Positions 2,741 through 59,110 of a stretch of 64,000 nt of DNA are shown in pieces. Source of the stretch: Trichoplax adhaerens (Eukaryota > Animalia > Placozoa); NCBI RefSeq assembly GCF_000150275.1, contig NW_002060944.1, forward strand, positions 9,138,159 to 9,202,158. Direction: 5' to 3'. The notes beneath the pieces are model-generated. The model worked only from the letters and a program-made list of their open reading frames with translations, was not told the origin of the DNA and made no database searches. Within the stretch, counting starts at the first letter, position 1. The number at the start of each line of letters is the position of its first letter. Both the position numbers and the translations under genes were made by a program.

Positions 2741-3277
2741 GTGTCCTTCTTCTCGTTCTGTCCGAGACTGCAACTCTAGACGTTGGACAGACAACTGGCC
2801 CGAGAAAGCTGTTCATGCATCATAATAGAGATTATTGATTTTTATACCGTCACACAGTGTCCTGGTTCTCATCCTTTCCGAAACTGCAACTCTGGACATT
2901 AGACAACACGCCGGAGAACTTGTATACAGTAGAATGTATCATCAAATTGATTGATTCTATTGTCATACGGTGTCCTGGTCTTCGTTCTGTCCGAGACTGC
3001 GAATCTGGACATGGGACAGCACACCCGAGGACCTGTCATGGAATGTACAGTGTACAGTACAGTAAGGGTTAGCATACACTGTACACTGTACACTGTGGGA
3101 TTTAGAATTGACAATGTCACACAGTGTCCGTCCGAGACTGCCAATCTGGACATTGGACAACACGCTCGAGAACCTGTAATACGGTATCTGAGATTCTATA
3201 CTGTCACACTATGTCCTGGCCTCGTCCTGTCCGAGAATCCAAATCTGCATATTGGACAACACGCCCGAGAACCTGTA
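2741..3277. repeat. Five degenerate copies of a ~60 bp core (period ~100-140 bp) upstream of SLC35B1
   Basis: Core TGTCCGAGACTGC-AATCTGGACATTGGACAACACGCCCGAGAACCTGT recurs near 2759, 2877, 2988, 3129 and 3228. Confidence 0.9.
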
Positions 3278-5619
3278 AGGTATCATACAGTAGAATGGAT
3301 ACCGTCGTTGGAAGAGTCCAAGTATTTCCATACGATTGTAGGACTACTTGCAAAATAGCATCCGCTTTGCCCCGTCTACTTTCTCTCTCTCTTTCTTGAC
3401 GCTAATCGCCGATTAAATAGTAAGAGAGAGGAGTAGGAGACGGTGGAAAAAAGGGCAACAGTTGAGTGCAGTAGTCTTTGACGATTGTAAAGTAAAATCC
3501 ATACAGACTGGATCTTACCATTAGCACCCCCCCAACAATCGAAAACGCCATGCTTGTACTCTGTAGTACAGAGGCCCAATGTCACCACCGTAGTTGTGTC
3601 GTGTCTACTGATGGAAAAGGGTTTAGCCATAGTGTAGACCTTCATGAATGAATGAGGTCTTGAAAATTCAATTTTGAAGGCATTTACTTTCTAATTTGAC
3701 TCAAGTTTGACCAATACCTGATCACTACAACCTTGAACAATTGAATACGTAAACTACAGCAAGTGAGGGTGCGGGACGACGTCAGGGACTTGGTACTTCC
3801 TCTTTCATGGAGGTCTTCTCCTTCCTCAACGTACCTTAAAACGATCATGGCGGATATGTCTGCAATATCCATTCATTTTATGCTGTATTGAATAGTACTG
3901 TAAGCGTCAATGCCTAGTGGAGTATACCGAAAATCCATTTAGTACAAGTATGTGCCAATATGCTGCTCAAGCGATTACTCCGACGGAAGACCTTGTAAAT
4001 TTCCACGCTAGTCCATTTGTAGCAGAATAACTCCATCAATCTGCAAGTAAGAGCGATACTGTCTTCAATACTTTCCATAGAAGAAGAAGTACTGGACTAG
4101 AAAAAGGACAATTTTATCCTAAAATCTCCAACAACACTGCCATAATATGGAGACATGGAATGTCTAGTATGCAATAGTAAATGATATCGGAGTTGTTGAG
4201 TTCGACAGTTGGGATATACGCGTAGATATTAGGGGTAGACTCATTCAGGCGACATGAATTCATTAGAATAAATGAACAGTCAGTTCATGATAGCGTTATC
4301 CTCAACTTCTAATACAGATGGCCATCCTAATTAATGTATTAATCAACTATAAAATGATCTCGCAGCGTGTGATGAATGAGCGCACTACTCGGCACAAGTT
4401 GAAGAAAGTAGCAATCGCGAGCCGCTTCCGTAATATTTCAACATCCAATTGCATAGTCCTCTCTGCCTATTTTAATCATTTGTACTTACACATAAATCAA
4501 CAAATACTGTGGCAGCGTTATGCTACTAATGAGGTCTAGTTACTTGAAGAAAAAAAGGATGGAAATGGATAGCAATCTCATGCGCTTAAAGTTCCAAAAC
4601 TGATTCCACAAGTAACGAAGGAAATGGCAAACTTGCACCGGTTCTACAATATCCTAAGATTAAATTGTAGAGCACAGCCGGACTACTTTAATCATTCCTA
4701 TTTACAAACATGTACAATTGTACATTAGCTAATTATACTGTACTTCAGCAACACTACAAAACAGTAATCTGCAATTAAATTAGAACGCTATTACTATTGT
4801 TGGACAACTCTCTTGGTTAAAAGTTGACCAGAACAGCATCAGCAACATTACAATCGTAAAAGAATATAGCAATCTTAAACTTGTTCTATAAAATTCTAAA
4901 ATTAATTTGTGTCGTGCAGTTGGGCTACTCTGACTGTGATCATTTTTGTTGGCATGCAGATCAGTCAATGCTCTAGCAGCCTCAAGATTGTGCATAAATG
5001 ATTAAGTTAAACCATAACACCATTGCTATTGACTCATCCTCAGTTGCTAAAAAAAAGGAGAATCTCGCTAGTCAAGCCTGATTGCATCTCCAATCCGTTC
5101 CATAATATTCTAATTTTAAAATAAGTTGTTTAGTTTAATGGAATCATTTTAACTAGCTGATATTTTTAAATTCATAGATACACCAATGGCACGCGGCTTC
5201 GCTTCTTGTTTATTTTTTCAAGTAGCCCACTCAAATTCAAACTACGAATACGTTAATTTTAGGCAAAAACTTTGCCTTTTTAAAACTTACTATAGCTAAC
5301 TTGTTTCAAATCATGAGAAATTACTACATCACGGTTAATGAAGAAGACCATTCAACTCGATAGTTACCAAGATATAAAACTATAGAAAGTACGTGATACC
5401 TTTTCATTCCTGTCGAGCTAGTATGCGATAAAAATAAATCATGCCTAGTTTCCAAGCACTTCAGTAAGACCTTCTCTCCAATTAAACAACCTGCGAATGA
5501 AAGTATCCTACACAATAAGAATAATCATATGTTTGCAAAATTAGCGCTACTACTGCACAGTGCATTCTTCTAAAGAACTACCGAATTTTGCAACTTTCAA
5601 GTCGATATCCATAGCACAT

Positions 5620-6603
5620 ATGTTGTTGAAGACGGTCTCCACTCTACTTTTCTACCTATTGGCTTCTACTCTCCACTATGGTGCTTCAGTGGGTAAAATG
5701 ATAATAAAAAAAATAAACTAATATTGCTTTCTGCTTTACATTTTTTATTGCAATATTGTGCCTGCAACACTACAACGTAATGAAATTGATGTTTATTTTG
5801 TATCTATGTGTATGTTCAGACACGAAAGACATTGTTCCATTATTCACCAGACATGCGAGAATGAAACGAAAAAGTATTTCTACTTCGGCACATATAAACA
5901 GCCTACAAAAATCATATTATGAAATCGATAGAATCAGGCAAAGTAAAACTCCGATCAAATCTCAATCTCGTCAAGATAAAGACTCAAAAGTCGATAGGCA
6001 AAGTATGAAAGGAATAGAGGCGCCTATGCCTGCCTTACTAGAACCGCAAGATGATACTAAACCTAATACGTCTTCTATCATTGCAATTAAAAGCCAAGAA
6101 TTTGCATTGACCAATGATCTCAATTTTAGTCAAACAGAACTTTATAATCTTTCTTTTGCTACTATAAGCAGTGCTAGAAATGTAACAAATCAAATGCCAT
6201 CAGAAGTAGCATTAGCCATCGTTGCTACAGTTTCTGCTTCATTAGCGATTCTATGCCTTTGTTTGTTGCCCAGCGTAAGATATCGAATCAACAGATGCTG
6301 CATGGCATTTAGTCTTAGCAAGCCTCCAAGCAGAAATCATCCAACAGAAATCCACCCATCAGCACCACCGGGTAGTTATCGTAGCCAGCAGAGACGCCAA
6401 CGTCGTCCATGGCCTTCCAATGGCACAGGACCAACGTGGTTGACTGGATTCAGTTTTACTAAAATGACTACATTCGTAAGATTTTATACACGTAGAGATT
6501 AATAATTTTGTGGTTTTGACCTGTATTAACAATTCGCTATTAGCTTACAACAGCGACGAAATCATCTCAAGCTAGAGTAATCTCCTGTACGCAACTTTCT
6601 TAA
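5620..6603 (+). CDS. Orphan single-pass type I membrane protein (~262 aa), 3 exons
   Basis: Exon 1 5620-5692 encodes a signal peptide (MLLKTVSTLLFYLLASTLHYGASV); phase-consistent splice into exon 2 5820-6475 (the long ORF); exon 3 6544-6603 ends in TAA. TM segment VALAIVATVSASLAILCLCLLPSV followed by RYR; sequons NTS, NFS, NLS, NVT on the luminal side. Confidence 0.75.
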
Positions 6604-7661
6604 GGTTAAGATGCCTATTTACTCTTGCTTAAAATTCATGACCAGCTACTACTATTTCACTTAGCACAAGCTGGTAAGTGATGATACGTTACGGATAAAA
6701 TTTGTATAAATTCAATAGCAATATGCTCGTCTATTCGCGTTTCTTGACACGAAAATGGCAGCAAACCTTTGTTCTATGTAATTATACGAGTATTGGTGAA
6801 TGTGAGACCTGTATTTATACCACAGTAAAATATGAATAAATAGCATTGCTAAAACGAGTACTACAAGGGATATGCAAAATTTTGACTTATCCGATAAAAA
6901 CTGGATAAACCAGATTGTAATGACTTTGAACTTTTCTATTCGTTATTAATAGTAGGAGTAAGAATAAATGTAAAACTGTCTATATTTCGCCTGCAACAGA
7001 TCATACCCAACATCCATATATAGAATTGTTTCCTTCGACAATTCTTTTTTGCTAGCACTATTTTTAGCTATATATATATATATAATAACAATAATAATAA
7101 TAAACCTTTTAAGATCCCTTATTAATCGTAATCATAGCAAGGAAAAAGCCCTGCAACTAAATATCGAAGTACATCACTAATCTTCCGTCTATTGAATAAA
7201 TAATAGCAATACCGGAGGATTACACTTTGAATTCCATTAGTAGAATTCCAATTTATTTGGTAATATTATATTGCTATACATTCTATAAACGAATAGTATG
7301 ATCATAATATCGCTAATCATGGATATCGTTGATATATCGTACATTATTCCATAGTAAGCGTCTCTTGTGAAGCAGTGACTATTTTAGTTAAAGTGGAAGA
7401 AATCAGTCAAATACTCTTACCGAAATCATCTGCAATTAAAGTTGCAACATGTTTACGATATCCTTCACAAACAACTATTCCTATCAATACTGTATTAGTT
7501 TTTATCAAGAAACATCATCACTAGCAAAGACATCTTGGCCATTCCTTAATGATTTCTATACATTGAAAAAAGAGTTGTGTTGATATTTTAGTGTTCCTGA
7601 TTTTAGAACTTCAAGTTTTATTCTTGTCAAAGCCTTTATCACATGAAAAAGTAAAAGCACC

Positions 7662-8846
7662 ATGGGGAAACCTAATCACAGCGATAAAGCCTCCTCTGAA
7701 AGCTGCAAAAGCCAAAAGCACACTATGAAAACTAACAACATAATCAAACAGCATAACAAGCAGGCGAAAAGGTATCATAATGCATTTCGTAATCAATTAA
7801 TACATCATGGTGGGAAAATTGTAGATTCAGCTCTATCGGTTTTAGCAAACCAACATGCTAGTCGTAAAAGATACTCAGAACCGGCTCAGTTAGGTTGGAG
7901 CGATTGGGAGAAATTAGATTTCGCCTATTTTCAGTTTCTCAAACAATATAAATTGGTCAAGCGGATCCATACCAATGCAAAATACACCATTTCTCTATAT
8001 AAATTCAATCAACTTCGCGTTACTGTCAAACATATTACCAATCCAGGTCGGCATGATCAACTTCTTCTATGGCAACGGCTACAAGATGAATATAAACTAT
8101 TAAAAGATTTTAATCATCCCAATATTATGCAAGTAAACGATTGGTATAAGACTAAATCAGACTATATGATTCTCATGCCAGTTATGCATCTTAATTTAAT
8201 TCAATACTTACTACAACGTCGGGCATTAGTACCGGAAAATGATGTTAAAACTATCATAGCACAAGTTCTTCATGGTCTTCAGTATCTTCATTCTCAGCGC
8301 TATATTCATTGTAATATTCGACCTTGTAATATCGTCTTTTCTAGGTCTAATACTCTTCAATTAGTTCTTTGTGGTTTTACATCGGCTGTCTATCTACCTG
8401 CAATTGCTCATTCAATCTCCGATAGCCAATGCAGTAAACACATCATTGATCATAAGGCACCAATAGATATACAAGATTTTAACTATTGTGCTCCAGAACT
8501 CTTTCAGTTACATGCTTCCTATAATTTTTCAACGGATTGCTGGAGTGTTGGTGTTCTGTTGTATAGGCTACTTTTCAATATGTTACCTTTCGTATGGAAT
8601 GATGATAATATTGCGCATGCAAACAATTATTATATGCAAAGAATGCAGACCATTTTCCAAACGCCACAAGGCGAAAAGCTACCTCTACGCTGTCGAAATT
8701 TAATAGTAAACTTGTTGAATCTAGATGTTACGCGACGGTGGAAAGTTTCCAAAGCACTGGAAAATGAATGGCTAAATGATCATCCAAGTAACATTGCAAT
8801 GGTTGCTGGCAATAAGAGTGATGATCCAGTTGATGTCGAGTCTTAA
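7662..8846 (+). CDS. CAMK-group-like pseudokinase, intronless CDS, 394 aa
   Basis: Kinase landmarks VTVK, RLQDEY, HPNIMQ, YCAPE, TDCWSVGV; catalytic loop HCNIRPCN and CGF in place of DFG. Confidence 0.88.
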   Translation: MGKPNHSDKASSESCKSQKHTMKTNNIIKQHNKQAKRYHNAFRNQLIHHGGKIVDSALSVLANQHASRKRYSEPAQLGWSDWEKLDFAYFQFLKQYKLVKRIHTNAKYTISLYKFNQLRVTVKHITNPGRHDQLLLWQRLQDEYKLLKDFNHPNIMQVNDWYKTKSDYMILMPVMHLNLIQYLLQRRALVPENDVKTIIAQVLHGLQYLHSQRYIHCNIRPCNIVFSRSNTLQLVLCGFTSAVYLPAIAHSISDSQCSKHIIDHKAPIDIQDFNYCAPELFQLHASYNFSTDCWSVGVLLYRLLFNMLPFVWNDDNIAHANNYYMQRMQTIFQTPQGEKLPLRCRNLIVNLLNLDVTRRWKVSKALENEWLNDHPSNIAMVAGNKSDDPVDVES

Positions 8847-9379
8847 CGTGCATGGTAGAAGATGATTTTCATCAAGCAATATTGAATCTTACTTGCGGCA
8901 GTAAATAAATACTTTTTTCTTACATGTGTCTTGATTAGAATGCACTCGAATTAATAACGTATTTCATTACTTACTATAAATATTATAATTAGAAAATGCT
9001 ACTCTAAAGGATTTAAGCGCATAAATATTTTTCCATAAGTGGCTCCTTAACAAATCGTGCAGTATTTAGATTGCATATGCGATCAGTGAATTCCCAGCTT
9101 ACTGGTTCGAGATCTTCTTTCATAGCGATTAATAGACTATTAGTTTTATTATAATGTTTCGACCTTAGATCTTGCATTAGCTTATAGTTAGAGGATAACA
9201 AAGAAATTATGCGTATGCTTATTGAATCATGAACTTAATTTGTAAGATTGTCTTATTGAACTTATTATTTCCCTAATTAAACCTACGAACATCGTTTGAA
9301 TCATTATAAGAAGAAAATTGGCTGTCGTATGAAAATTTTACTCCAGTAAAATGTTTTGTGAAATGATTTTGATGTTCTT

Positions 9380-10510
9380 CAGTACTTATTTGCTGCGAGT
9401 ATTGTGCGGTTGCTGAACTCAGCCTGGCTGCAAGTCTAATTGCAAAGCACAAAACTGCTTTAATGATCTTCAGTTCTCATTTACCACAAGTATTATACGA
9501 TAGCTAAACTCCGGCTAGCTATAAGTCTAATAGCAAAGCACAGAACTACTTTCATTTAATTTACTTTCTAGTATATTGGCATATCTTATTAAAAGTTTTT
9601 CAGTACTTCGCTTCCGCCATTACTGCACGATTACACTTGGCTGGTAACTCGAAGCCTAATTTCTTTCTGCTGTACTGACCTAATTTCATCAGACTTATTC
9701 TATAGTAATGGCGGATCTCCTTTAAAAGCTTTTCAATCTGCTACACTGAGCTACATTCACCAGACTTGTTCTATGGTAATGGCACATCTCTTTCGAATGT
9801 TTTTTTAGTCGATTATCTAGCTCGAAATGGAAATACATTGTGCTGTGCTGAGCTACTTTTATCAGACTTATAGTAATAGTGTGTCTGTATAGGGCCTATA
9901 TGTCGAAATATAATTGCAAACTGTTGCACTGAGCTACTTTCAGCTTGTTCAACAGTAAAATCATCTCTCTCAAAAGATATTCCAGGTACTTATACGCCAC
10001 TATTATTGCACATTTCTTCAACTGATGGCTCGAAATCTAGCAAATTTTAAGCTACTTTCATCGGACTTATTCTTTAAATAACAATATTTCTCTTTCAAAG
10101 GATTTTAGCTGGAAATCTAATTTCAAAGAGCTGCATACAATTACTTTCATCAAGTATGCTCTATAATAATGGCGTATCTCTTTAAAATTTTTCCCAGCGT
10201 AGGCACCATTATATTATTATACATGGACTACCTAGCTGATAGTTGCAAATCTAATTACAAACTGCTGTGCTAGAGAATTTTTTCTTTTCGGACTTCTTCT
10301 ACAAGTACTAGTAGTACTTTCGCATCGATTGGAAAAGGTTTTCAATAGATTCGTTTATACGCAGGACAGTTTATGCACAAGATTTTCAGTCCTTGTACGC
10401 CACATTATTACACAATTGCCTTGTTAATGGCTGTAAATTTAGTTAAAAAGTGCTGTACCGGACTATTTTCATCAGACTAGTTCCATAGTAATGATGTATC
10501 CCTTCAAAAT
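9380..10510. repeat. Degenerate tandem array, ~9-10 copies of a ~80-190 bp unit
   Basis: Core GAGCTACTTTCATCAGACTT-TTCTATAGTAATGGCGTATCTCTTT recurs near 9545, 9677, 9748, 9850, 9931, 10050, 10141, 10270 and 10461. Confidence 0.8.
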
Positions 10511-11934: not shown

Positions 11935-12283
11935 GATATTTAAAGGGGCCGAATAGATCCAACCGTTGTGTCGTTGTCGATCCGATCAGAAATTAGTTGT
12001 ACTGTTACAACTTTAATTAATCAGATATTTAAAGGGGTCGAAAAGATCCAAACCTTGCCGTTGTCTATCCGATCAGAAGTTAGTACTGTTACAACTTTAA
12101 TTAATCAGATATTTAAAGGGGTTGAATAGATCCAAATCTTGTCGTTGTCTATCCGATCAGAAGTTAGTACTGTTACAACTTTAATTAATCAGATATTTAA
12201 AGGGGTCGAATAGATCCAAATCTTGTCGTTGTCTATCCGATCAGAAGTTAGTGGTACTGTACTGTTACAACTTTAATTAATCA
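11935..12283. repeat. Minisatellite, 4 near-identical copies of ~84-92 bp
   Basis: Unit GATATTTAAAGGGGTCGAATAGATCC...CCGATCAGAAGTTAGTACTGTTACAACTTTAATTAATCA starts at 11935, 12024, 12108 and 12192. Confidence 0.97.
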
Positions 12284-13314: not shown

Positions 13315-13715
13315 AACATTTCCATTTTCATCAGTTCAACGGTCTTCGACTTGCTTGTAAGTATTGCATTTCTATTCTCAAATTGGTCGTAGCCATGTAT
13401 AGAATTCGTGTCCATGTATAGTACAGTGGTAGTAGATACTGTTGATGACGGCTATTTAATCAACAATATTCTTATTTTGGTCTTTTCTAGAGCTGGCAAT
13501 ACCATCTCTTCAACACCATATAGGAGAATATTTACATTTTTCTCAGTTTAGCCGTCTTCAACTTGCTTGTACTGTAAGTATTGCCTTTCGATGATCAGAT
13601 TGATCGTAGCCATAGCTGTAGAATTGGTGCCGATATCGTAGGAACTGTTGATGATGGCGATTTAATCAACAGTTTTTCTTTTCTTGGTCGTTTTAATCAA
13701 CAGCTCTCTTTTCTT
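13315..13715. repeat. ~220 bp tandem duplication immediately upstream of kinase 2
   Basis: GTCTTC-ACTTGCTTGTA..GTAAGTATTGC...TCGTAGCCAT...ACTGTTGATGA.GGC.ATTTAATCAACA present twice (from ~13342 and ~13554). Confidence 0.85.
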
Positions 13716-22100: not shown

Positions 22101-23107
22101 GCAATCGAAATGCCGTTGGAGCACTTGGTATAGCTCATTTTTTTGGGGGGGAGGGGGATTAAATACTGTCTATCCATGTATGATCGAACAGTAGGAATTT
22201 GTCCATGTTGATGGAGTATTGATGGCATGTCATGATTGAATAATAATTTATGGACGTTGTTGGTATACAGTCATAAAGCATGGATCAATTCAAGGCTCCA
22301 TCGAGTTTAGGCAGGACAAATCGAAAAATGGTCGTCAAAAGGAAAATAAGACCGGCCATCCAGTACAGCATGTTGTCTAGAATAACTTATGGATCGGTCT
22401 AATAGAATCATCAACGAGTAGCGTGGAATTGTCAACGTTGGGTAGTAGTATTATTGGACACGTTTCAATGAGGGTTTAGAATCAATATTTAAACGGGGCA
22501 AGACATGGACATCAAATCAAGGCAATCGATGCTGTACGCGTAGGATGACATTGACCATCGCAAGATGTCAAGGATGATGTTGTTTTCATCCTCATATCCA
22601 TAGTAAGCCTAGATTGATAGCAATACACTACAAAACTAGTCATGGCATCAGAAGGTGTAAATCGATGGAGATTGCCTGTTGACTAAAATGGATAAGGGAC
22701 CCAAATTGGACTAAAAAGTGGAGAAGGAGAGCGTCAACAAAGTTGAATGAAGATTATCGGTTGGATTTTACCTGATTGAGAATATTCATTCGCGATTCTA
22801 AAGATTCAATTTGTTCTTTCTGCTGATCGACCATGGTTAACATTTTATTGCCCAATTGGCCAATATGCTGGATGACTTGATTGAGCGAATTGGCAACAAT
22901 TTTCTTGGCCGCATCGAAATGTTGAGCGCGCTTATTGACTTGAGTAAAATAAGCATGTTCGAGACCACCTGCCTTTTCCAGTAGTTCGTTCTCTCGGCTG
23001 CGTAAATCTTTCATTAACGACCCTAATTGCTCTTTATACGGTTGAATAGATAAGGCTTTACTTTGAGCAGCCTCATCGCTTGACGATTCTCCACCAGTTT
23101 TGTCCAT
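19196..23107 (-). CDS. ABI: Abl interactor (WAVE regulatory complex subunit), multi-exon
   Basis: Exon 1 22772-23107 has the WAVE-binding coiled coil (VANSLNQVIQHIGQLGNKMLTMVDQQKEQIESLESRMNILNQ); exon 2 AIDIHNDKVA...RYTRKAIDFNSLDDVG; Ser-rich and poly-Pro exons; terminal SH3 VRAMYDY...DEL...DGW...GKFPGNYVEPLD-stop. Confidence 0.9.
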
Positions 23108-23509
23108 AGGCTTGCTAATGACAGTCAAAACAGGCCAAAATGGAGCTAAAAATTGAAAACGATTTGACGATTTTCTCTCTCCAACCACAACAGATCTCAG
23201 CTAGCAGCAATAACAGACTTGCGCACAGCCGCGCTCAAACGCCTTTTGTTTTTTCTCTTGGTTGGGCCCTGCCACTAGCCGATAGGACTCTATAGAAATT
23301 AGTGTCTAATATGGATGTTTTGATACACAGAATAGACGATTGCTTTCCGTCCTTCCGGCTTGTCGGGGTGGAACTACGCCCTGGATGCCATGGTGCAACC
23401 ATTGGACTTTGGACACCGCTGCTCAGTCTTAACTCTACTACGTGATGGACTGTATGGTACAGTAGACAGGAAACGCAACAGACCTTTTTACTCAGTACTA
23501 GCACCAATC

Positions 23510-24165
23510 TGGACATCGTGCATCAGACGGACAGATTTTTTTGCAACCCAGAAGGGCGAAATCTCCCAAAATCACTTGCTTACAGTAGGATCGATCTTCA
23601 GTATCTATTTTTCTTCATCACTTCGACTCATTTAAAAAGAGTAGTACTAATATAAAATCAATTTTAATCCTGGCTTACTTAAGAAGAATAAGTGAATTAC
23701 AAAATCGAGTATCCGCTTGATAACATGATCGCGTCAAGTGGACATCGCACATCAGACGGACAGACTTCTTGGTTGAACAGAAGGCTTAAATCTCGAAGAA
23801 TCAGTTACTTACAGTAGGATCGATCTTCAGCATCTCTTTTTCTTCATCATTTCTGCTGATTTAAAAAGAGTAGAACTTGAATAGAATCAATTTTTTAACC
23901 CTTGCTTAGATGCGAAGAATAAGTGAATTACAAAATCGAATATCCGCTTGATAACCTGATCGATATCGTACGATATCAGACGGACAGACTTCTTGATGGG
24001 GCAGAAGGCCCAAATCTTGAAAAATCAGTTACAGTAGGATCGATCTTCATCACTTTTATCATTTTAAAAAGAGTAGAAATTAAAATAGAATCAATTTGAA
24101 TCCTTGCTTAGTTTAGAAGAATAAGTGAATTATAAAATGGAGTATCCACTTGATGGCATGATAGC
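23510..24165. repeat. Three tandem copies of a ~225-230 bp unit in the ABI/WBP2 divergent promoter region
   Basis: CAGACGGACAGA at 23524, 23753 and 23977, each followed by TTACAGTAGGATCGATCTTCA, TTTAAAAAGAGTAG and AAGAATAAGTGAATTA. Confidence 0.95.
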
Positions 24166-24794
24166 GTTTGCAATAGTATCCTACAAGATGAAGCCGAAAT
24201 GTCCGATCGTCCGAGTCAAGTGTCCAGTGTTCAGTCCAGGTGTATCTGGCACCGGATTGGAAGTCGGTGTACCGCATCTAGCATTGGAGCAGTCCATGTC
24301 TCGTCCCGTCCGAGTTTCTCCGTTTATGATACTGTACAGTGTATAGTATGCAGTGCTGTCTACGCAATATATCGACCGGATAATTAGTCTAGCAACTCGG
24401 AAATCCCTGACTCAAATGTATCGAGGACTATTAGAAAAAATTCCTTTTTCTAGTAGTCCTTAGTTGTGTACAGTACATTGGAGATGATAAAATTGGCTAC
24501 TGTCATAACTAGTCATAACGAAGTGGTAAGTCAGAAACACCATCTTGACGAGATGAGGCGGAAACGTCTGTCCGTCCAAGCGTGGTCCGTTCACGTCTTC
24601 TACAGGACAGTAATCCACGACTGACACTCAACGTGGACGTGTGTACAAGCGAGCTGTGACTCTCCTGTTAGCCTGACGTACACTGTACAGTATAACGTCA
24701 CTAGGAGTGAAGCACTGGGTGACTCATTCAAACTGGACCACGACCCTACTGTAACTTTCAACTTGTTTACTGCGGCTGTCCGCTAACCCAGTTG

Positions 24795-27564: not shown

Positions 27565-29719
27565 CAAAGTAATTGAACTCTTCTTTTGAAACGCCATGAT
27601 AAACGCTGATTGATTTCTTGATAGCAGTAGGTCCGTATGGTTTAGAGATGTAAATACCATTTCACATGATGAAGTAACACAAGATGCCTTTATCAAATGC
27701 ATAATTAGGATTAAAATAATGCAAAGTATGTGCCTCTTAGATATCTATTTAACCTATACGCATACCTGATGTGTGATTTACAAAATCCTAAAAGTATACA
27801 GTATTCTTATTTTAAATATCTTCACTTGTCTCCTCGCAGCCGTTTGGTAAGACTTTACCGCACAATTAGCACAACGCGTTTTATCTACTATACTGATATG
27901 ATGACAACGAATATAAATCAGCGCGCACCATGTAGGGTTGTCTTTCTCGTTGTCTATATTTACTCATATAATGCCAATTTGCTCACAAATAAGGATGTAT
28001 AATATTGTATTTTGGAATGATAGTAATATATGCGAAGCTAACGGAGGGTTTTTATTACTTTTCGAGCTAATATCAAAATAGTGTTGCTTTAGATTACTCG
28101 AAGAGTATTTTAATTTGTCCATTTGATGTTCAAGCGCTGCACTTGAACCACTTCGTCATTGTCAGATAGCTACTGTAGACCTGTACTACAGTTAGCGTTC
28201 CGTTGGATCAGAGTAGCAGTATAATGACACATTTCTCTCAGTTAAATTGACTTCTTTGCTTATGATATCGTCTAAAGTATGACTAAAATTGAATAAATGG
28301 AACGCAGATGTAACATCGAGATGTGTTTTTCCCATTGTGTCACGATTAACATGAATACCAGGATGTGAATTAGCCGGTACTAATTCAAATTTACGGCTAT
28401 CGCTACATATTCCGGATCTTCTACTACTATTCATTCTATTTCACTGGCAATTGATTACAGTTAGTATTGATCGTAGATAGCGTACGATTGCAGATAAATG
28501 GTACAGTTAAAATGATGAGGAAATATTTGGAGTATACTATACGACCATTTCGTGTCTATCTCTCTTTTTACTACTGTATTCATACTACCATCGTAGGGCC
28601 ATTTTGTATATACGTCCATTGAATAGAAGGGTATCTAATGAGTTTAAAGATTAATTATTATTGACCTAGTCTTCAAAAATTAACGTGTAATTCATTCATT
28701 TACGAATCAATTTCAGAGCTAGTCATGAAAGTATCAGTACTGTAAATAGACTAACAAAAAAAGAGAAATTGTACGGATTCCTAAATGTCCCATTGGCATA
28801 ATCATGACTGTATGCTGTACTGGCAGTACTGGGTATTATGTCCGCCAGAAAAGAATCCGCGGAAATCACTCAATATCAGTGCAATCATTCTGAATTTTGA
28901 CTGAGATGACTATTCGTATACTGTAGTACACTTACTACAGCATGTACTGTATTCCATCCTATTTAGATGCCATACACTGATCAAATTATATCGAAAGATA
29001 GTTGTGCCGAGTTCGTAAATTGATTTTCATCATTTGTGAATGCTATATTGAAATCGAAAATGCTTGCACTCGGAATCCTGTTTTACAACTCCAGTAGAAG
29101 AATATTTCGATTTGAACTACTAGTACTGTATTGTATTGACTATGGAGGTGTTGTAAATCACTCGCTGAGTCATGGAAAGTGGACACGGTAGTAATTTCTA
29201 GTGCTGTTTTTACACAAGTCGATGACTGAGTTAGGAACTACTCAACCATTTTCTCCCTATATTCCTCACTGCCCCTTAGCCAAACTCTGTTCTTCCATAC
29301 TGTTCCTGTTACTGCCGCTACTCATACAAAAAACTCCTTTCTCTGGGTGAGTAACGGCATGGAAAGAACAGACATTTCATCTCGTCTAAAATATTTATGC
29401 CAAATACTGTTCTACTATTACGGATCAGCTTACACGGACGATTTAAATATTGTAATAAAAGCAGCTTTTTATCTTAAGTTCATAGGTCTAACTTTATTAT
29501 GGTTTAGTAAACTTATGCAGAATAAGACATAGTCTGCCGCATTACATAAGCTATCTTATTGATCTAAAATTCTGCTTGGAAAAAGCCTCTATAAGATCAT
29601 CAATGTGATTGAAATTAGTACCAATGATTTAGAAAACCGACACGGGCAAGATCCAGACTAAGTCGTCATTTTTCGACATTGACGATCTCCCATTGATTTA
29701 CTGTAATTAATTAATAATC

Positions 29720-30462
29720 AAAAAATCTCCATCCGTCTGAGGGAGGATCAGTCCAGGTCTTCTTTGCTACGAGTCCATGAGTGTTTTACACCACAGTTCA
29801 ATACTGTCCGTTACAATAAAAAGTCCATCCGTCTGAGAGAGAGGACTGGTTCAGGACTCCAGCCTCTAGGTCTTCTTCTAGGCGTCCATGAATGTTACAC
29901 CACAGTTCGATACTGTCCGTTACAGTAAAAAAGTCCATCCGTCTGAGAGTGGACTAGTGCAGGTCTTCTTCTAGGAGTCCATGACTGTGTTACTCAGAAC
30001 TTCCACCACAGCTCAGTACTGTCCGTTAAAATAGAATAAAATACTACAATAAAATAAAAAAATATAGTGGCATATCGTTAATTTTGCCTAAAATAAAATA
30101 AAGACTAAATTACTGTTTTGCCACTGTATAGTTTCATAATTACTAATATGCCATTGGAAATTTCAGTAATTTACTAATATGCCATTATAGTCATGAAAAA
30201 GTCCATCCGTCTGAGGGAGGACTGGTCCAAGTCTTCTTTGTAGGATTCTATAACTGTGTTCCACTCAACTTCCACCACAGCTCAGTACAGTACTGTCCGT
30301 TAAAATAAAAAAAGTCCATCCGTCTGAGGGAGGACCGGTCCAAGTCTTCTTTGTAGGATTCTATGACTATGTTCCACTCAACTTCCACCACAGCTCAGTA
30401 CAGTACTGTCCATTAAAATAAAAAAAAGTCCATCCGTCTGAGGGAGGACCGGTCCAGGTCTC
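29720..30462. repeat. Six degenerate copies of a ~95-115 bp unit upstream of RPL21 (two groups of three)
   Basis: (G)TCCATCCGTCTGAG at ~29728, 29823, 29933, 30201, 30314 and 30428, most followed by GGAC.GGTCCA.GTCTTC and CACCACAG...TACTGTCC. Confidence 0.95.
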
Positions 30463-30738
30463 ACAGTCCACTACTGGACCAGAATGCCGTATCTCCCTGG
30501 CGTCCACGTGATCAACTCATTTACATACACCACATGACATGAGCAGAAAAATCGACTTGCTGGAGTTTTCGACGATCTCTTCGTTGTATAGTAACTTGTG
30601 TAGAGGATAGGAACTAGTCGAGCTAAAAGGTAAAATGCTTTCTCCTTGTCTTTTCTGACTATTTTATGCTTAAAATGATGATTTCATGTTGCTGGTGATT
30701 CACTTAAACATTCATTTTACCCTTTGATCATTAAATAG

Positions 30739-32180
30739 ATGGGGAAAACTCACGGTTATCGTCGCGGAACACGTTATATGTTCTCTGCCGCTTTCAGGAA
30801 ACGCGGTATGAGCTAGTAGTGGTCAACATGGCGATCCATGAATGTGTTATACTAGAATAGAAAGACGATTGATAGTTGACATGATCTTGTTCATAATAAG
30901 ACTAATTGAACTTAAATCCTTTTAGGCGTCATTCCACTCTCTACGTATTTGAAAACGTACAAAGTTGGCGATATCGTAGATATCAAGGTATGTTCTTTTT
31001 TCACCCATAGTCTTGATATAGCAGATAGACGCGATACATGTACTATAGTCTTAAAAAGAGTACTGGCGTCTTGGCTGTTGAAAGGAATCGTGCGCTTCCT
31101 TAAGTCCTGTTCCTTTCCGATAATTTACTCGAGTTTTAGTTTAGCCAGTACTCACCAGTAATCAAGGATCGTATATTGTACACTTTAGTCTTAGTAGTAG
31201 AGTTGGGGTTTAGCCAGTGCTCATGAGTAATCAATCATCGGACAGTATACTGTACACTACGCTTTAGTCTTCTTACTTTTTGAATAATCAACAGGCTAAT
31301 CTACTGGAGAGAGCATTAGACTCCCCCAACTATTACTGACGGAAGCAACAGCAGCCGTAATAATACTAAATATGATGGATTGCTTGTTATAGGGAAAAGG
31401 TTCCGTCCAACTTGGTATGCCACATAAATGCTATCATGGTAAAACTGGCCGTGTATTCAATGTTACTAAGCGCGCTGTTGGTGTCATCGTCAATAAGCAA
31501 GTCAGGTAAGATTGACAAGATTGCTAGCTATTAGCTAGCAAGCTATGCATACCATTTCACTTGTCGACAGAAACGCAAAAGTCTACACTCAGTCAAAACT
31601 ATCTTTTCGTGTTAATGGAAGATAAATGTGCAATACAATTAACCTCTATTCGCTCTTCTTTAGAAATCGCATTATGCCCAAGAGGATCAATGTTCGTATC
31701 GAGCACATTAGTCATTCCAAATGTCGCGATGACTTTTTACGGTAAAATACGACGTCATGCCTGTATGCTTGTATGGACAGTATAGTCAATGCATTGCATC
31801 TTGATGAATTTTTAATGCTTGTGTATTGATATTAGTCGTGTAAAAGAGAACGAACGCTTAAGAAAGGATGCAGCTGCGAAAGGAGAAAGAGTTGACCTTA
31901 AGCGTAAGGTAAGCTAGTCAATGCGCAATAGAAAAGGATGTTAATCATACGTCTGCTAAAAGTATACTTTGAAAGTAGAGACTCTTGTGTCAGTGGATCA
32001 ATTACTGTCGCCCAGTTAAACGATAACATGGATTTATATTATCATCTCAAAGTGTACGTTATCAACTAAACATGCTGTTATTGCTTGCTGTAGCCTAAAG
32101 CCCCTAAAGGAGCACAAACGGTTATCGCAGAATCCGAACCTGAAGTTCTTCGAGCTCTTCCTTATCAATTTATTGCATAA
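30739..32180 (+). CDS. RPL21: 60S ribosomal protein L21 (eL21), 6 coding exons, 159 aa
   Basis: Exons 30739-30805, 30926-30987, 31393-31505, 31664-31741, 31836-31908, 32094-32180 total 480 nt; [47 protein letters not shown]; AATAAA at 32202. Confidence 0.98.
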
Positions 32181-48200: not shown

Positions 48201-48628
48201 CATCTTTGTAGATCGATTTGTGCTGCTTACAGGATAAAATGGACTCGAATTGGGAAAGGCTTCTTGATGAACAACAAGTGGGAAAATTAGTGAATATACA
48301 GCATAATTAATCTCAAGTTAACTTCTCGTTGGACGACATTGCAGCAACTGGTTCACGATGCCATGGACAACTGGACCTGCCACTGTCCTCGGATGGACGG
48401 ACTTTTCATACCAGAGAAGGCTAAAAATGTGGAAAAATAGTTACTCAGTACAGATCTTTCGTCTTTGTTTTCTAAATCACTCGTATTAATTTGAATAACA
48501 TTCATGATCTGATTGAACTGCTTCTAAGCAGAACTTAGTAGCAGGCAATGGAATGCATTGGAATATTACTTCATTTAGAAAAAATCAGTCCATTCAAAAT
48601 CGACTATCTGCCTATTTGTCATAAAGGA

Positions 48629-49084
48629 GTGTTTGCCATAATTGATCGACCGAAGTAGGCCAAGTGTCTGTCCGTCCAAAGGAGTTCCAGGTATTTTTCT
48701 AGTAGTCTATATAACTACGCCAACTTGGTAGCAAGTACTCCATATGTTCCTGGAGTTAGAAGGACGGTATAGTCTTCTAGTCACGGTTAGAACAGTACCC
48801 TATACAATGGAACTTACTAATCGTACATGCGCATACTGAATGATTGAAGTGTTTGCCACAATTTATCGACCCAAGTAGGCCAAGTGTCTGTCCGTCCAGA
48901 GGAGTTTCCAGGTATTTCAATACCTTTATGATCTATATCACATACAGTATACTATGACGACGCCAACTTGGTAGCAAGTACTCTATGTGTTCCTGGAGTT
49001 ACAACGACAGTATAGTCTTTTAGTCACGGTTAGAACAGTACCCTATACAATGAAGCTTACTAAATCGTACATGCGCATACTGAA
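48629..49084. repeat. Two tandem copies of a ~220-240 bp unit upstream of ELAC2
   Basis: GTAGGCCAAGTGTCTGTCCGTCCA (core at 48666 and 48886), ACGCCAACTTGGTAGCAAGTACTC and TAGTCACGGTTAGAACAGTACCCTATACAATG are each duplicated. Confidence 0.95.
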
Positions 49085-49559
49085 GGATTCTATGAATACA
49101 GTACTTGTACTGTAGAGTACAGTGTACAGTACAGACCTTTAGAGTCTCTAGTGTGCAATATGCTGTAGTGCTGGTTGATACGGTTGGAAAGTTCCAACCA
49201 TAATTCCTATACAAACCCTAGTAAAGATTTCGCGACTTTTCTACAGTAATATGCGGCGTTATGCGCACGAGCAATGCCCATAAACTCATTCCACGGTCTC
49301 TAGTCTCCACCAGCTGTACTGATTCATTGATTGAGGCGTTGAGAGGTGACCTGACCTAAGCAAAATGGCGATTGCCATGGTAGCACTAACTTGAGACTGC
49401 AGAGAAATCAACTCTCATGTTGTTGCAATTTCAACACAGCGTTTACCTACTTCATTGATGGTCCATTAAATCCTTCAAAGTGAAGCCATTTCTCTCCAAC
49501 TCTAGGCAAGGCATTTCAGTGGTGTCACAAGATTGCACTAGTAGCTCATCTTTTCTTCA

Positions 49560-52500: not shown

Positions 52501-54724
52501 AATTAAGACCCGTAATTATGAGACTGCTTGTATTATTCAATTTCAGTACCTACTATCATACAGTTGCATTACTGATTTATTAGCGTTAACAAAAATGCTG
52601 TTACCGATTGTATAAGGTTGACAAGAAAGTGCCAAATAACTGGATAATTACCGATACTTTATTAACGTATCATTTCAGACCACGCAGTCTTATGGGTTTC
52701 GACAGGTCTGAGATTTTTTGCTTTATCGCTGCACCTTATTGATCTTTCGACTTGTGCAACTAACGTCAATTTTAATTATTCGATAGGTCAAAGATTTTGC
52801 AAGAAACGAACGTAAATTCGATTGTGGAAAAGATTAATAATCGAATGGATATCAAAAATGCTATACAATTTAGTAATCAAGACATTTTGGATAGAGAGAA
52901 TCGTACACTATCTGTTAAAGCTACATCACCTGTACAACGCAATCTTATTGGCAGGCACGGTGAAATTGTATTTCTCGGTACCGGCTCCTGCTATCCATCG
53001 AAATATAGAAATGTCTCCTCCATTTTGTTACGTCTAAAGTTGGTCTAGTGTGCATAGCGTAAAATCATTTTAATTAACTACTTAATTAATTTTTAAAATA
53101 ACGTAAATGACGATTTTAATCAATTGAAATTTGAAATTATAAAATTATTATTCCAATTAGTAAGAATAGCTGCATGTTAATGGATTGTGGCGAGGGTACG
53201 TTTGGGCAATTATATCGACACTATGGTAGCGAACTAAGCGATATCTTGCGACAGCTGAAATTTATCTTCATATCCCATATGCACGCTGACCATCATCAGG
53301 TATTAAATAAATATGAATTGATTAATGCTATAATTGATTAAATTACGACTACCTTTCTATTTAGGGTATCGTTGAAGTATTACTGGAGCATAAACGGGCT
53401 ACTCAGGTTAAATTTTACATAACTAATATGTTATTCCTCATCGGCACTCGTAAATACTTGTATTCATGGCAAAAGATTACTGTCTGTCGATCTCTTATAT
53501 CTAACTTTCCTACTAGTCTAAGAAAAGAACCTGATTAGCAACTAAATTACGCATTACTATTTAGAGTACCGATGGATATTATTCACCTCTTTATGTTATT
53601 GGACCATGGGCAATAAACAAGTTCTTAAACGAATATAATTCGTATTTTGAAAGTGTACAATGGAGGTAACTAGATACTGATTACCATTTCCTTTATCGTT
53701 AATTGTTGACCTAATATGAAAAACAAACTTGCTGCTGCATACTTATACTCTTGTTGTATTTTAGATTTATGTCAGCCACAGAATTCTTTAAGGAAGTTTG
53801 TGTATTTAGTGATGTAGTAAAAACCGAATTAGGCATTATAAAAGTTAGGAAAATCATGATTTAATTAATCTTTGTAGCAGGCCATGCTTTATCCTATTGC
53901 AAGAAATAACCGATTACTCTTATATTGTTAGCTGAAAACCGTTTATGCAGATCACTGTAAAGGAGCTTTTTGCATAGCTCTAACACACAGAGAAGGCTGG
54001 AAGCTAGCTTATTCAGGCGATACCCAACCAAGTTCTAAATTTGTTGAAATTGGTTCATATCTACCAATAACTTTTTCGTTTCATTAAAATGAGAAGTTCT
54101 TGTAATATAAAGTGCTCATTGTTATGTAATTAATGCCTACATCTAATAGGTAAGGATGCAGACGTATTAATACATGAAGCCACTTTCGAAGATGATTTAG
54201 TCGATGAAGCCAGAAGTAGAAAGCACAGGTTAATTTTTTATTTCAAGTCTTTACTATAAAAATTTTTTCACCATTCTTAAATTAAAAATTATGGTTACTC
54301 TGATTAATTATGTATACTCGTATTCTTATTTCTTAAAATGCATTATGAATGCTTGCTATTTACCTAATTCAATTCGATCCTATTCTATAGCACGACATCC
54401 GAAGCAATTGAAATTGGTGTTAAAATGAATGCAAAATTTACCATTCTTACGCATTTCAGCCAACGGTATCCTAAAATTCCAGCTTTTAGTGAGAATTATA
54501 GCGATCGAACTGGAATCGCTTATGACCACATGACGGTAACCGCAGTAATTTTATTACTCTTTTACGTGTTAAACTATTTGAGACTGCCGTATTGTTGTTG
54601 ATGATGTTAACGTTACCTGTATACAAATTTTGATTAGGTAAACTCTGAAAGTATCCTTTTCCTACCAAGATTACTAAAACCTCTTAATATAATTTTTAAA
54701 GAGGAAGAAGAAATAGAAGACTAA
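49560..54724 (+). CDS. ELAC2: tRNA 3'-endonuclease RNase Z long form, multi-exon
   Basis: VYLQILGNG..YLFNCGAGIQR, PGKFLNDKAEALGVP, IVFLGTGSCYPSKYRNVS, LMDCGEGTFGQL, ISHMHADHHQG (HxHxDH), YSGDTQP, LIHEATFED, LTHFSQRYPKIP; stop at 54722-54724. Confidence 0.96.
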
Positions 54725-56922
54725 TTTCCATTATGTGAAAATAGTTATCAACTAGTTTACATGTCGTAAAAATAAAACTTAAAGGCCAATTTGTTTAAAA
54801 ATTGCCCAGCAATACTGTATTAACGAACCAAAGCAATCAAAACTTTATTGTTACTGAAAATAGATTGTTATTACTTACAGCTGCTAATATCGATTATTAC
54901 GCTACTAACAGGTATAATTATCATTTTCTAAGGCAAAATAAATTTTTTATGATAGCACGTAATAAGTAACGAGACACTTTTTTAAGGAAGGTTTGAGTTA
55001 TTAAGAAATAGCTAATTTCTAACTCAGATTGTACCAATGCAGTATGCAAAAAATGGATAATAACGTTGATGGACAACATTCGCATCGGTGAAACATTTAC
55101 AAAAATGCTATTCAAGAAAATTTACTAAGCATAGTCGGCATAGAATACCTTAAACGGAATAAATTAAATTTTAAGACATGGCTACAATAGTTTTCGATAA
55201 GGAATACATGCTTATGAATATATAAAATTTGATCATACTACTATAGATTTCCTTTTTTAACGCTGTCACCATCTACGGTACTAATTGTAAACTATAGAAA
55301 TTGAAAAGAAACAGTGGGTATTATGGGCTTTAAAATTTTTCATAATGAGACCACTGACTATAACTAATAGCTGTTATTAACTGTAACGACATTTGTGGTT
55401 TTAATTCATTTCTCATGCATGCGAGTTATAAAAATTTAGATAGAATGTAATTAAATTACTCAAACTTGTTTGTTACGATAAAGCCAATAGCTGCAAGACA
55501 TCATATTGATTCGTTGACGTAGTCATGAAGTCAATTTTGCTATCGACGAGTCTGGTGTCTGGTAGTGTCTAGACTCTGACTATTTGTCCATGTCAGCTTC
55601 GTGCAGGGTAGGTTGTATAGCTTCATGATTATCGTCATAAGACTTATATAAGAGCTACAGCAAGAACTGACTTGAGCGTATTAGATAAACAACAATCATA
55701 TTAATTCCGATTTTGGTAATCGTAGACAAATTGGAGTCGATTGGAATTAGAATTGTTTTTACTAATAACAAGATTGTATTACCATTTTAAAAATGGCGTT
55801 TTGCCAGATCTCTACGTCAGAAAATACAACTCAGATACCAGGTTAATATACGTAAATGGGTCTGTTTTACTAAGGGCGTTGCTGAGACACTCTATTAAAT
55901 GTTGGACGTCAAGTTACTAATACAGTACAGTCATCTAGCAGATTCCTCATAAGCACTTCAAATTTACAGATTACTTGCTCGCTAGTTTATATCATGCCTC
56001 ATTTTTGAATAATAAAATGAATACTATTATAGATATTGTTGTACGATTACTATAATTGAAAAAGCGGTACTCATTCGATGTTATCAACTCTTGTACTAAT
56101 CTCACATAACGCAATATTTATTAATGTAGATTTAACGTAGACTGAAATATACCGCGCTCGATAAACACTGTAATATGAATATTACTACTGCACTGTAGCA
56201 ATTCTTAAACACTGTATTTTTGTATCCCGTTGTGCTCATCTGTATCAATTCCTTATGTTTTGTTGATACCTTGTAAGAGCGTAGTCCTATGTTGCAAGGA
56301 TATCAATAAATAAATAAATAAATAAACAAGCCACGTTACAGTGTCTTCAGGTTTACAGTACTAATGTTTCTAAATTTGCTAGACTGACAGAGCGACTCTA
56401 TTCGAACTTGATTGAGAGAAATGTAACCTACAGTAACTCTATTAGGTCTTTTAATACTGTATACTAAAACAGCGTATATATAGTAACAATAGAGAATTTA
56501 CCGGTTTATATAGGTAGAAATGTGAATTACCACCACTAGCCACAATCAGGATAGTTGGACAATTGCTATTAATTCTCATTTTATTTAATTAGCAGATGAA
56601 TAATTTCAAACTTGATTAGAAAAGTGAAGGGTCCGATTTCAATAAATTTTTCTTTGTAATCGTGATTACAAAAAGGCAATATTAGATTGCTGCTGTACAG
56701 TATACACAGTATCAATCTATTTCACACCAGAAATTGAATAAAAGTAAATGTGAAGGTAATTGTCGTTGTCTAGCGATCAAAATACTAGAGTACTTTATCG
56801 TAGAACAAATAGAACTGTCTTTAATAATCAACATAAAGCAGTAGTTGTAGTATTTGTAAAATAATTGTGTTGATAGCTTACAGTTATCAACCTCACTACA
56901 GCCTAGTTTTCATGCAATTTAT

Positions 56923-58325
56923 TCAGCTTAGGATCCTTAAAGTCTCTAAAAGTCTCTTATATTGTGGCGATTTCACAGTTTCTTGTACTGCAAAATATTG
57001 TAATAAATTGGTAGATTAATATCTTGGCAGACTTTGTAACATGCACATAGAGTGTAAATTTACTATTAGGTAATTAATTATAACTGTGCATAAAAACTTT
57101 TGGCAATAAAGTGCTTATGACGACGTAAATCCACACGTTAAACTATGACTATTCTAATCAAATACGTAAGCTAGAGTTATGAGGCTATTGAACAAGTCAA
57201 GGCTAGTAAAGTTAGTAAAGATTCATTAATAAATTAAATTAAATTTTTTATAGTAAAGTAAGCCATTGAGATTCGTATAACGTAAAGTACAATATCAATG
57301 CGCTTAATCTATTACTTGATTGCAATTACCTTTAGAAACATCAACGGAATCAGCTTGATCCATTCTTTCTTTAGCAAATTTTAGAGTGGTATCTCTTGCT
57401 GAGCCACGCAGGCCTTGCATGTATTTTATCAAGGTTTTAAAATCACTTTCACTAACCTAAAACACATTTATTAATGTATTCGTTACTCTCCTTTATAATT
57501 CAATTTACATCATATTAGTCAATTTCAACGACACATACTCAATTACTGTATAGAAGCACAGTGCAGTATTAATTATAATTAACCTAGTGATGATACGAGT
57601 ATAATTTTAGAGCTCATGACCGCTTTACTGCTGTACTGTACTGTATACAAGTTGGACACAATCATCATCATGCTACCTGTACGCGTAAATGGATAATGAT
57701 TTCTCTACTGTCTATAAAGACAATTAGGCTGTGGCATTATTGCAGACTGTAGCTCTGGAACAAGCTATTCAGAAACTATATAGTACCTACAAAGCTGGCA
57801 TTGACTAGAATATGCCATTTCCATAAACTATGCATATCGTCCATTGCACAGTGGAACATGATGATCGAGATGAATTAATGGAAAAAATGACTATAAATCT
57901 CTTACAGTCAATCAACTACAGTAGTATCATTTTGATAATCTTCCATATGTAAATCGATGGAAATGCACTATGATTTGCGTCTAGAGGCTAGAGTAGCTTT
58001 AAAAATGTTGAGGATATCCATTGGTCTATACCGCGTACTCGTCAGTCTGCAAATAGTCCTTTACCTTACTGACATCCATCATATTTTTCAGTAACCAAAC
58101 TTGCCTATTCTTTTTAAATGACCAATTGGATCGATCATCTTGCCATTTTCTTAGATAATCTATAGCAGGATGGGTATCATTGCCGGTCGTAGTATCCTGT
58201 AATTTTGGATCAGGGACGGAGGCATTTTCTGTAGATGCCAGACCTTTCTGATTAAGCTTATTCTTTGCTTTGCTCTTCCTCGACTTGTTCTTCTTATTCT
58301 TCTTCTTCTTATTATTGGTTTTCAT
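56923..58325 (-). CDS. C7orf50: C7orf50-like WKF-domain (DUF2373) protein, 3 coding exons; start codon uncertain
   Basis: Lys-rich N-terminus, AIDYLRKW...WSFKKNRQVWLL, then YMQGLRGSARDTT, then QYKRLLETLRILS-stop; GT-AG junctions in phase. Confidence 0.82.
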
Positions 58326-58599
58326 CTTGTCCTCTATGCAATTGTGTACCGTATTAGACAGTATCAATACAACGATTGCATTCACAACAGCTTAATCCTC
58401 CTTGGTTTTAATTGCAGTCTTTGCAAAAGATAGAAGAGCCAATTGAATTATTATTGCTTGGCTGCAGCCATTCTGCATCTTGCCATTTCAGCTAGTCTCG
58501 GTTTCATTTGGTCAGAAGCAGAGTCAGCAGTCTCAGGACTGTGTCGACAGCCTATAGTGTCTTCGACGATTTGCATTCTCATACAATACATCAACATCT

Positions 58600-59110
58600 T
58601 GATCAGTGTATCCTACACTGTACTCCACCGGGCCATGGATGAAGCGAGTCCTTTTTGTCTGTCAGTCTGCACGTTAACTACAGTACACTGGACGGTCTAC
58701 AGTCTATAGTACTGTGCCGTACAGTACACTGTACTGTAGTCTCCGACTGTTCTTGTTGGTCAACTCCTCAGCCTACAGTACGTTGTACTGTACAGTACTG
58801 TAGGTCTATCAGCAGAGCCAGTCCATTTGTCTGTCAGTCTATGCCCAATGCAGTACCCATAGCGTACTGTCCAGACTTGTTGGTCAACCCCTTAAAAAGA
58901 AAAGAAGCCTACTGTACAATGTACTGTACATACTGTAACTCTAGAGACCGGTCCCTACTCCATGTACTGTACTGTAGGTCCATCAGTGGAGAGTCCATCT
59001 GTCTGTCAGCCTACCCCCAATACAATGGACAATTGAACAGTCCACAGTCTATAGTACTGTACTTACCTTAGCGTACTGTAGCCTCCCACTGTGCTTGTTG
59101 GTCAACCCCG
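58600..59110. repeat. Three degenerate ~170 bp copies in the C7orf50/PKA-R divergent promoter region
   Basis: AGTCC.T.TGTCTGTCAG.CT (~58647, 58820, 58992) and CTTGTTGGTCAAC (~58752, 58876, 59094) are triplicated. Confidence 0.88.

Follow-up and report, generated by a model that had tools for sequence, protein, structure and literature searches.

Our analysis of a 64-kb stretch of the genome of Trichoplax adhaerens (contig NW_002060944.1, positions 9,138,159 to 9,202,158; hereafter the window) indicates that a short core sequence recurring upstream of housekeeping genes belongs, with good probability, to an old mobile element of ~375 bp, as the inner and most strongly conserved part of its ~53-nt terminal inverted repeat (TIR). 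As judged from profile matches, three of the five repeat arrays in the window, those in the ABI-like/WBP2 spacer, upstream of RPL21 and between the RUN gene and ELAC2, are derived from this element, one TIR arm having been tandemly duplicated together with adjacent DNA. A lineage-specific, transposon-borne motif marking placozoan housekeeping promoters was already published in 2025 together with chromatin data, so the window contributes examples worked out in detail rather than a discovery. New, in modest increments that can be checked against public data from Micro-C and the assay for transposase-accessible chromatin (ATAC), are the geometric origin of the core's orientation, the recurrent tandem amplification of single arms, the core-specific conservation, the 7-bp target duplications and the embedding of the element in ACAGT repeats. 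A first-pass annotation of the same DNA had proposed a lineage-specific promoter module, amplified by local tandem duplication and possibly seeded by a mobile element. Our data support its lineage specificity, its multiplication by local tandem duplication and its seeding by a mobile element.

The core is made up of three RTCY tetramers, its reverse complement being (GGAC)n-like. In the form GTCYRTCYGTCY it occurs 11 times in the window, at 23754 and 23978 (-), 24566 (+), 29823, 29933, 30201, 30314 and 30428 (+), 48666 and 48886 (+) and 58993 (+), against 0.03 occurrences expected from shuffles. With at most one mismatch the count rises to 21 against 1.6 expected, the sites gained including 23525 (-), 29727 (+), 48391 (-) and three sites in the array at 58.6-58.8 kb. 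All cores quoted in the first-pass annotation were correctly located. Its pattern, which matches 11 sites, misses GTCCGTCCATCC, the commonest form of the second-arm core, present for example at 48391; GTCYRTCYRTCY is put forward as a scan pattern alongside the element profile. Across the 105.6-Mb assembly (1,414 contigs), to which all genome-wide counts refer, the bare core was enriched, with 658 sites against 190 for a reversed-pattern control, and the composite of core, 8-24 nt and CCAGG occurred 127 times against once for its control. The tail GGAG..TCCAGGT, which had been noticed behind the core, is therefore real and belongs with it to one longer unit. Some of the genome-wide matches are nothing more than (GTCT)n or (GTCC)n tracts (contigs C1367, C1377 and C339, for instance), as would be seen if runs of GTCY tetramers were microsatellite-like and meaningless. 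Against such a chance origin stand the excess in the window, the excess of the composite across the genome and the alignment of the flanks over hundreds of bases, which refute it for the three element-derived arrays and leave it next to no probability overall.

Stacking of 45 core sites revealed two types of arm, alike over ~40 nt outward of the core (..CCAGGT..GTCCATG) and over more than 300 nt inward. In three genomic copies (L002, L003 and L013) and in the window, a core on the minus strand and a core on the plus strand lie ~275-290 bp apart with a conserved AT-rich body between them, and inverted pairs of arms in the same order, (-) then (+), 290-315 bp apart, recur on many contigs. The arms share ~53 nt in inverted orientation, namely the core plus ..CCAGGT..GTCCATG. 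The element bounded by them is ~375 bp long, AT-rich inside and encodes no transposase. With these inverted termini, many dispersed short copies devoid of coding capacity and target-site duplications in the four copies in which they are readable (L003, L002, L038 and L021), it is a miniature inverted-repeat transposable element (MITE), that is, a non-autonomous TIR DNA transposon. When a full copy was used as query, at least 276 first-look candidate places were found genome-wide, in contrast to the single MITE family of ~20 copies described by Wang et al. 2010, who considered MITEs rare in this genome (PMC2871265). The 40 of the 276 candidates that were scored yielded 49 matches, spread over many contigs and 67-85% identical to the query (most of them 75-85%), and 33 copies were aligned end to end. 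The first 65-84 nt of the repeat unit upstream of ELAC2 were found at 25 further places in the genome, and the genome-wide list of arms comprises several sub-families with a common terminal repeat. Scans of the element against Rfam and for tRNAs gave no match.

In the alignment of the 33 copies to the profile, the two cores showed column identities of 0.932 and 0.955, compared with a mean of 0.862 for the body, and neither value was equalled by any 12-column window of the body; in the outermost 40 nt of each arm, column identity fell to 0.63-0.65. The same was observed in a subset of 20 copies (L021-L040) picked without reference to the arm, in which the cores reached 0.938 and 0.933 against 0.860 for the body. 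From the divergence of the body, 3-4 times fewer exact consensus cores would be expected than are present. All six units of the RPL21 array retain the core, five of them exactly and the sixth with one mismatch, and 11 of 12 core columns show no variation, in units that as a whole are 73-96% identical. This fits a core that would have been under constraint after insertion.

The window was scanned by nhmmer with a profile hidden Markov model built from the 33 copies (443 positions; Table 1). The repeat counts of the first-pass annotation were correct throughout: 5x (2757-3279), 3x (23.5-24.2 kb), 6x (29.7-30.5 kb), 2x (48.6-49.1 kb) and 3x (58.6-59.1 kb). Its claim that one core unites all five arrays has to be narrowed, since the profile matches three of them and gives no significant match in the other two, so that a shared origin is shown for the three only. 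The complete element between the RUN gene and ELAC2 bears outward-reading cores at 48391-48402 (-) and 48666-48677 (+), and the extra right arm on its ELAC2 side belongs to a tandem duplication of ~220-243 bp (48628-48847 and ~48848-49090; direct-repeat families D14 and D20) whose units are 82% identical. In the ABI-like/WBP2 spacer the profile matched at 23442-23636 (profile 9-202, E 1.4e-10), 23739-23865 (84-202, E 1.6e-7), 23976-24244 (96-415, E 1.3e-5) and 24511-24620 (331-433, E 2.1e-8). The left arm with adjacent body is triplicated here with a period of 224-229 bp and bears cores at 23525, 23754 and 23978 (-); the right arm, with its core at 24566 (+), is degenerate.

Upstream of RPL21, a remnant made up of left arm and body (29524-29813; E 1.1e-28, profile 10-278) is followed by the extra arms, represented by five matches to about profile positions 9-114 (E 8.5e-5 to 2.4e-7) and a sixth, partial one (E 1.4e-3). 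Each unit comprises the arm out to its GTCCATG terminus plus ~55 bp of flank, with periods of 96-114 bp (96, 110, 113 and 114); Tandem Repeats Finder reported a period of 113 at 96%. The cores at 29727, 29823, 29933, 30201, 30314 and 30428 are all on the plus strand, and the array, which includes a 268-bp gap holding another small repeat, ends ~260 bp before the RPL21 start codon. A 30-bp tandem repeat of 2.8 copies (30108-30191) breaks the array between the third and fourth arm units. The whole RPL21 and ABI units were also considered as dispersed families in their own right and rejected, both being local; only arm and body are common genome-wide.

Table 1. Element copies, local repeat arrays and one coding exon in the window (position 1 is the first base of the window)
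Feature	Position	Strand	Evidence and remarks
Complete element between RUN gene and ELAC2	48350..48713	+	nhmmer E 1.3e-110, profile 58-434 of 443; BLAST 79% identity to genomic copy L003
Extra right TIR arm, core 48886-48897	48832..48911	+	nhmmer E 4.6e-18, profile 318-405
One diverged element, ABI-like/WBP2 spacer	23442..24620	+	four nhmmer matches; repeat families D5, D7, D15, D18
Element remnant and five further tandem left-arm copies, upstream of RPL21	29524..30478	-	nhmmer
Local 5-unit tandem repeat upstream of SLC35B1	2741..3280	+	no demonstrable relation to the element
Local 3-unit tandem repeat between C7orf50 (-) and PKA-R (+)	58644..59110	+	ACAGT-rich; relation to the element unproven
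RPL21 first coding exon	30739..30813	+	Pfam Ribosomal_L21e positions 1-25, E 1.8e-6

The cores do read toward the neighbouring genes, as the first-pass annotation had observed, but the promoter grammar it derived from this is not needed. Both arms of the element read outward, as seen at the RUN side (48391, -), the ELAC2 side (+), the ABI-like side (-), the WBP2 side (+) and RPL21 (+). Since the cores face outward in both arms, the arm nearest to any flanking gene points at that gene by construction; gene-ward orientation is a matter of inverted-repeat geometry and not a promoter rule. This bears on the idea that the core is a native promoter word, acquired independently by the arrays and amplified in place, with the mobile element incidental and the orientation a grammar. 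Arrays upstream of housekeeping genes with the core reading toward them would agree with such an origin, as would the core-like tetramer runs in the SLC35B1 and C7orf50/PKA-R arrays, where no element is detectable. However, the SLC35B1 array gave no nhmmer match even at E 10, has no core within one mismatch, and its unit is absent elsewhere in the genome. The C7orf50/PKA-R array, whose unit occurs genome-wide at no place outside its own locus, contains one exact and three one-mismatch cores, has one weak nhmmer match (E 0.11) in the ACAGT-rich part of the profile, and would count as only one independent event. In the other three arrays, 50-300 nt of element sequence, common to hundreds of dispersed copies, accompany the core. 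Largely refuted by the alignment of the family, and with the orientation following from geometry, an origin as a native word is improbable.

Amplification of arms is recurrent and not universal. In the subset L021-L040, whose 20 copies were chosen by full-length similarity only, 14 are single elements and 6 have extra partial or whole copies adjoining, and the first-pass view of promoters built from repeat arrays therefore does not stand as a rule. Wherever amplification was seen, in the 40 loci as well as in the window, the amplified segment contains an arm with the core: the right arm in L006, L018, L020, L026 and L033, the left arm in L016 and L019, and whole elements in L022 and L025. Same-strand clusters of 2-6 arms are frequent across the genome (e.g. 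C1402:915447-916576 and C1404:1132241-1132878). The arrays probably arise when one arm and 50-170 bp of neighbouring DNA are tandemly duplicated one or more times. Two loci have a structure of their own. On an unplaced contig of 5.4 kb (L019, G000:C1009:1792-3142), left arm and adjacent body together form a satellite-like tandem array of six or more units, 215-223 bp each. In L025 (G000:C1399:63925-70278), four whole elements in mixed orientation lie within 2 kb (locus positions 2995-5008).

As to its surroundings, the element with its core lies upstream of RPL21 and ELAC2 and within the divergent ABI-like/WBP2 pair, and elsewhere upstream of the N-terminal exons of Tim10, Det1 and Sec15. Among neighbouring open reading frames (ORFs) at genomic copies, Pfam identified five. 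Four of them (Tim10/DDP, a G-protein-coupled receptor, Det1 and Sec15) are N-terminal exons that lie 165-920 bp from the element and read away from it, and the fifth is a 3' exon 2.3 kb off. Small as this test is, it agrees with a placement of the element at 5' ends. The location in 5' intergenic DNA of housekeeping genes, claimed by the first-pass annotation, is supported, and a motif of this kind has been connected with promoter hubs through published chromatin data (PMC12221973).

The 5' intergenic regions in which copies appear to sit are rich in the ACAGT microsatellite. Over the 100 bp that adjoin the element on its outer side, the 7-mers ACAGTAC/GTACTGT have a density of 1.35 per 100 bp, ~13 times the background of ~0.1, and ACAGT repeats adjoin or invade the outer TIR. 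In L002 and L003, 7-mers of this type also occur inside the target duplication, where they separate the terminus from the remaining arm. Within the window, such 7-mers are clustered in 5' intergenic DNA at 58501-59000 (12), 60001-60500 (7), 30001-30500 (5) and 49001-49500 (4), with a background of ~0.5 per 500 bp. Wang et al. 2010 found 54% of ACAGT microsatellites at most 1 kb upstream of genes, with ribosomal-protein genes enriched (PMC2871265), and ACAGT has been described as the second 'insulation' motif of Trichoplax (PMC12817080). The microsatellite resembles the element in occupying the same 5' regions, including those of ribosomal-protein genes (PMC2871265), and it touches or invades the element's ends; it differs from it in sequence and lies outside the conserved element body. 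The ACAGT repeat probably marks the insertion target of the element, and it may drive the unequal exchange that produces arrays.

Target duplications of 7 bp abut the CATGG...CCATG termini in L003 (GTTTGGT) and L002 (CTCTAGT), and duplications of the same length matching at six of seven positions were found in L038 and L021. Scored over all 19 copies with both termini, a small sample, five had a duplication, compared with 0.99 for shuffled pairings; three of these five (L012, L026 and L031) are matches of the ACTGTAC repeat. Target-site duplications of Mutator and Mutator-like elements (MULEs) are usually 9-11 bp long. Here the four readable ones are 7 bp, and a 9-bp reading is perfect only in L002. 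The MULE transposase domain (PF10551) was matched at four places on small contigs, none of which matches the element profile or holds the core; one of them is 73% N and the others are perhaps truncated. The contig that is 73% N (L041, G000:C1033) is at the same time the best of those with this domain. No autonomous partner was found among these four loci, nor through the P-element transposase family PF12017, which gave zero matches with its control equally silent. Kim et al. annotated repeats with the automated EDTA pipeline, from which their 'Mutator' class is derived (PMC12221973); with 7-bp duplications and no MULE transposase locus carrying the repeat in our data, the 'Mutator' label looks unsafe for this element.

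According to Kim et al. 2025 (Nature), ~2,978 housekeeping genes of T. adhaerens form promoter hubs, and one motif is enriched at the loop anchors; the hub promoters often hold Mutator DNA transposons with this motif inside the TIR, and a Mutator family with such TIRs is common to four placozoan species (PMC12221973). The letters of the motif are absent from the text and supplements of that study, its logo being given only in figures (Fig. 3d; PMC12221973), and our search of the literature for Trichoplax and the literal motif in combination returned nothing relevant. The insulation motifs of T. adhaerens have been described as 'repeating ACGG and ACAGT', the ACGG one coming from a transposable element, as Kim et al. 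had already shown (PMC12817080). Repeating ACGG is equivalent to (GGAC)n, which is what the (GTCC)n-like core gives in reverse complement, and on this ground the core is very likely the published motif. The core lies within a transposon TIR in housekeeping promoters both in the window and at other loci, and its likeness to the 'GP1' housekeeping-promoter motif of Kim et al. includes the organism, the class of genes (translation, trafficking and RNA processing) and the position in the TIR of a promoter-inserted DNA transposon. In contrast to our observations, arrays are not described in that study, in which the word 'tandem' is never used (PMC12221973).

Parallels exist in other systems. As background, Mu elements prefer the 5' ends of maize genes, and the short interspersed nuclear element (SINE) B2 has spread CTCF sites in the mouse. 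In common with such systems, the present element is short, exists in many copies, has inverted ends and target duplications, is concentrated near gene starts and carries a candidate binding site. Unlike in those systems, one arm alone is tandemly amplified after insertion, and the inner TIR block outlasts the termini.

Taken as a mechanism, an old MITE of several sub-families scattered through the genome would supply the core, a putative binding site for an architectural or promoter factor, and duplication of the arm would multiply such sites. A present role of the core as such a binding site is likely. Another history, in which the element is a neutral hitch-hiker, is possible though the less probable course: it would have inserted by preference into the open, ACAGT-rich promoters of highly expressed genes, with the core a former transposase-binding site and the arrays a neutral product of slippage or of unequal exchange between flanking ACAGT repeats. 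Targeted integration is listed as an alternative by Kim et al. (PMC12221973), and the embedding of copies in ACAGT clusters with invasion of the outer TIR agrees with neutrality, as do the age and decay of the family, the failure of the MULE and PF12017 searches (the latter with its silent control) to find a partner, and the predominance of single copies. Against neutrality, conservation within the element peaks at the cores and is lowest at the outermost termini, which transposition needs equally, and the RPL21 units have all kept the core although as a whole they have drifted to 73-83% identity. Furthermore, loop-anchor enrichment and in-silico mutagenesis tie the published motif to chromatin contacts (PMC12221973, PMC12817080).

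Several points weigh against our main reading. Constraint on source elements, through transposase binding, could account for the extra conservation of the core in place of a function for the host. Two of the five arrays, those of SLC35B1 and C7orf50/PKA-R, do not fit the element, and the identity of core and published motif was deduced from a one-line description (PMC12817080). Pfam could identify only 5 of the 36 nearest neighbouring ORFs, and around 40 copies no strand bias was seen for ORFs of at least 80 codons (left side, 19 minus and 16 plus; right side, 16 plus and 21 minus), a crude proxy of promoter position that we judge unreliable because ACAGT repeats and GC-rich promoters make stop-free frames.

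Kim et al. left undecided whether domestication or targeted integration accounts for the placement of the transposons (PMC12221973), and a core that outlasts the rest of the element favours domestication. A bolder proposal, which we put forward as speculation more likely to fail than to hold, is that single TIR arms have repeatedly been multiplied in tandem under selection, which would give certain housekeeping promoters more sites for a placozoan loop or insulation factor, the length of the array tuning hub strength or expression. Both the binding of a factor and a benefit from the arrays are putative. If the proposal were true, the element would have been 'domesticated' arm by arm, the core being kept while the termini needed for transposition decay.

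The kinase region of the window was correctly reported by the first-pass annotation to be free of the core, there being no exact or one-mismatch copy between 1906 and 23525. It contains an 84-bp tandem repeat (11935-12252; 3.7 copies, 92% identity), inside which GTCTATCCGATC, two mismatches off the core, is found; no relation of this repeat to the element was detected. In L025, a frame of 428 codons on the minus strand (121-1404) gave a sub-threshold Pfam match to a clostridial neurotoxin translocation domain (E 6.6e-4, 19.4 against 25 bits), which is most likely spurious.

The gene names used here are in part those of the first-pass annotation, and Pfam, run exon by exon, upheld some of them. 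No supporting match was obtained in these searches for ELAC2, WBP2 and 'ABI', whose names were given to single exons read by eye, and for the RUN gene, with no ORF confirmed, both the name and the minus-strand position are those of the first-pass annotation. The 'ABI' exon (22754-23188, -) has no Abi-family match and resembles the ABI N-terminal helix by eye; the only Pfam matches, below threshold, were to the unrelated families LOH1CR12/BORCS5 (E 0.007; 16.9 bits, the cut-off being 24.7) and FAM76. Names backed by Pfam are C7orf50 (WKF domain), PKA-R (RIIa), SLC35B1 (UAA) and RPL21, the later exons of which matched at E 1.6e-13 and 6.6e-5; the last core of the RPL21 array lies ~300 bp before the first coding exon of this gene.

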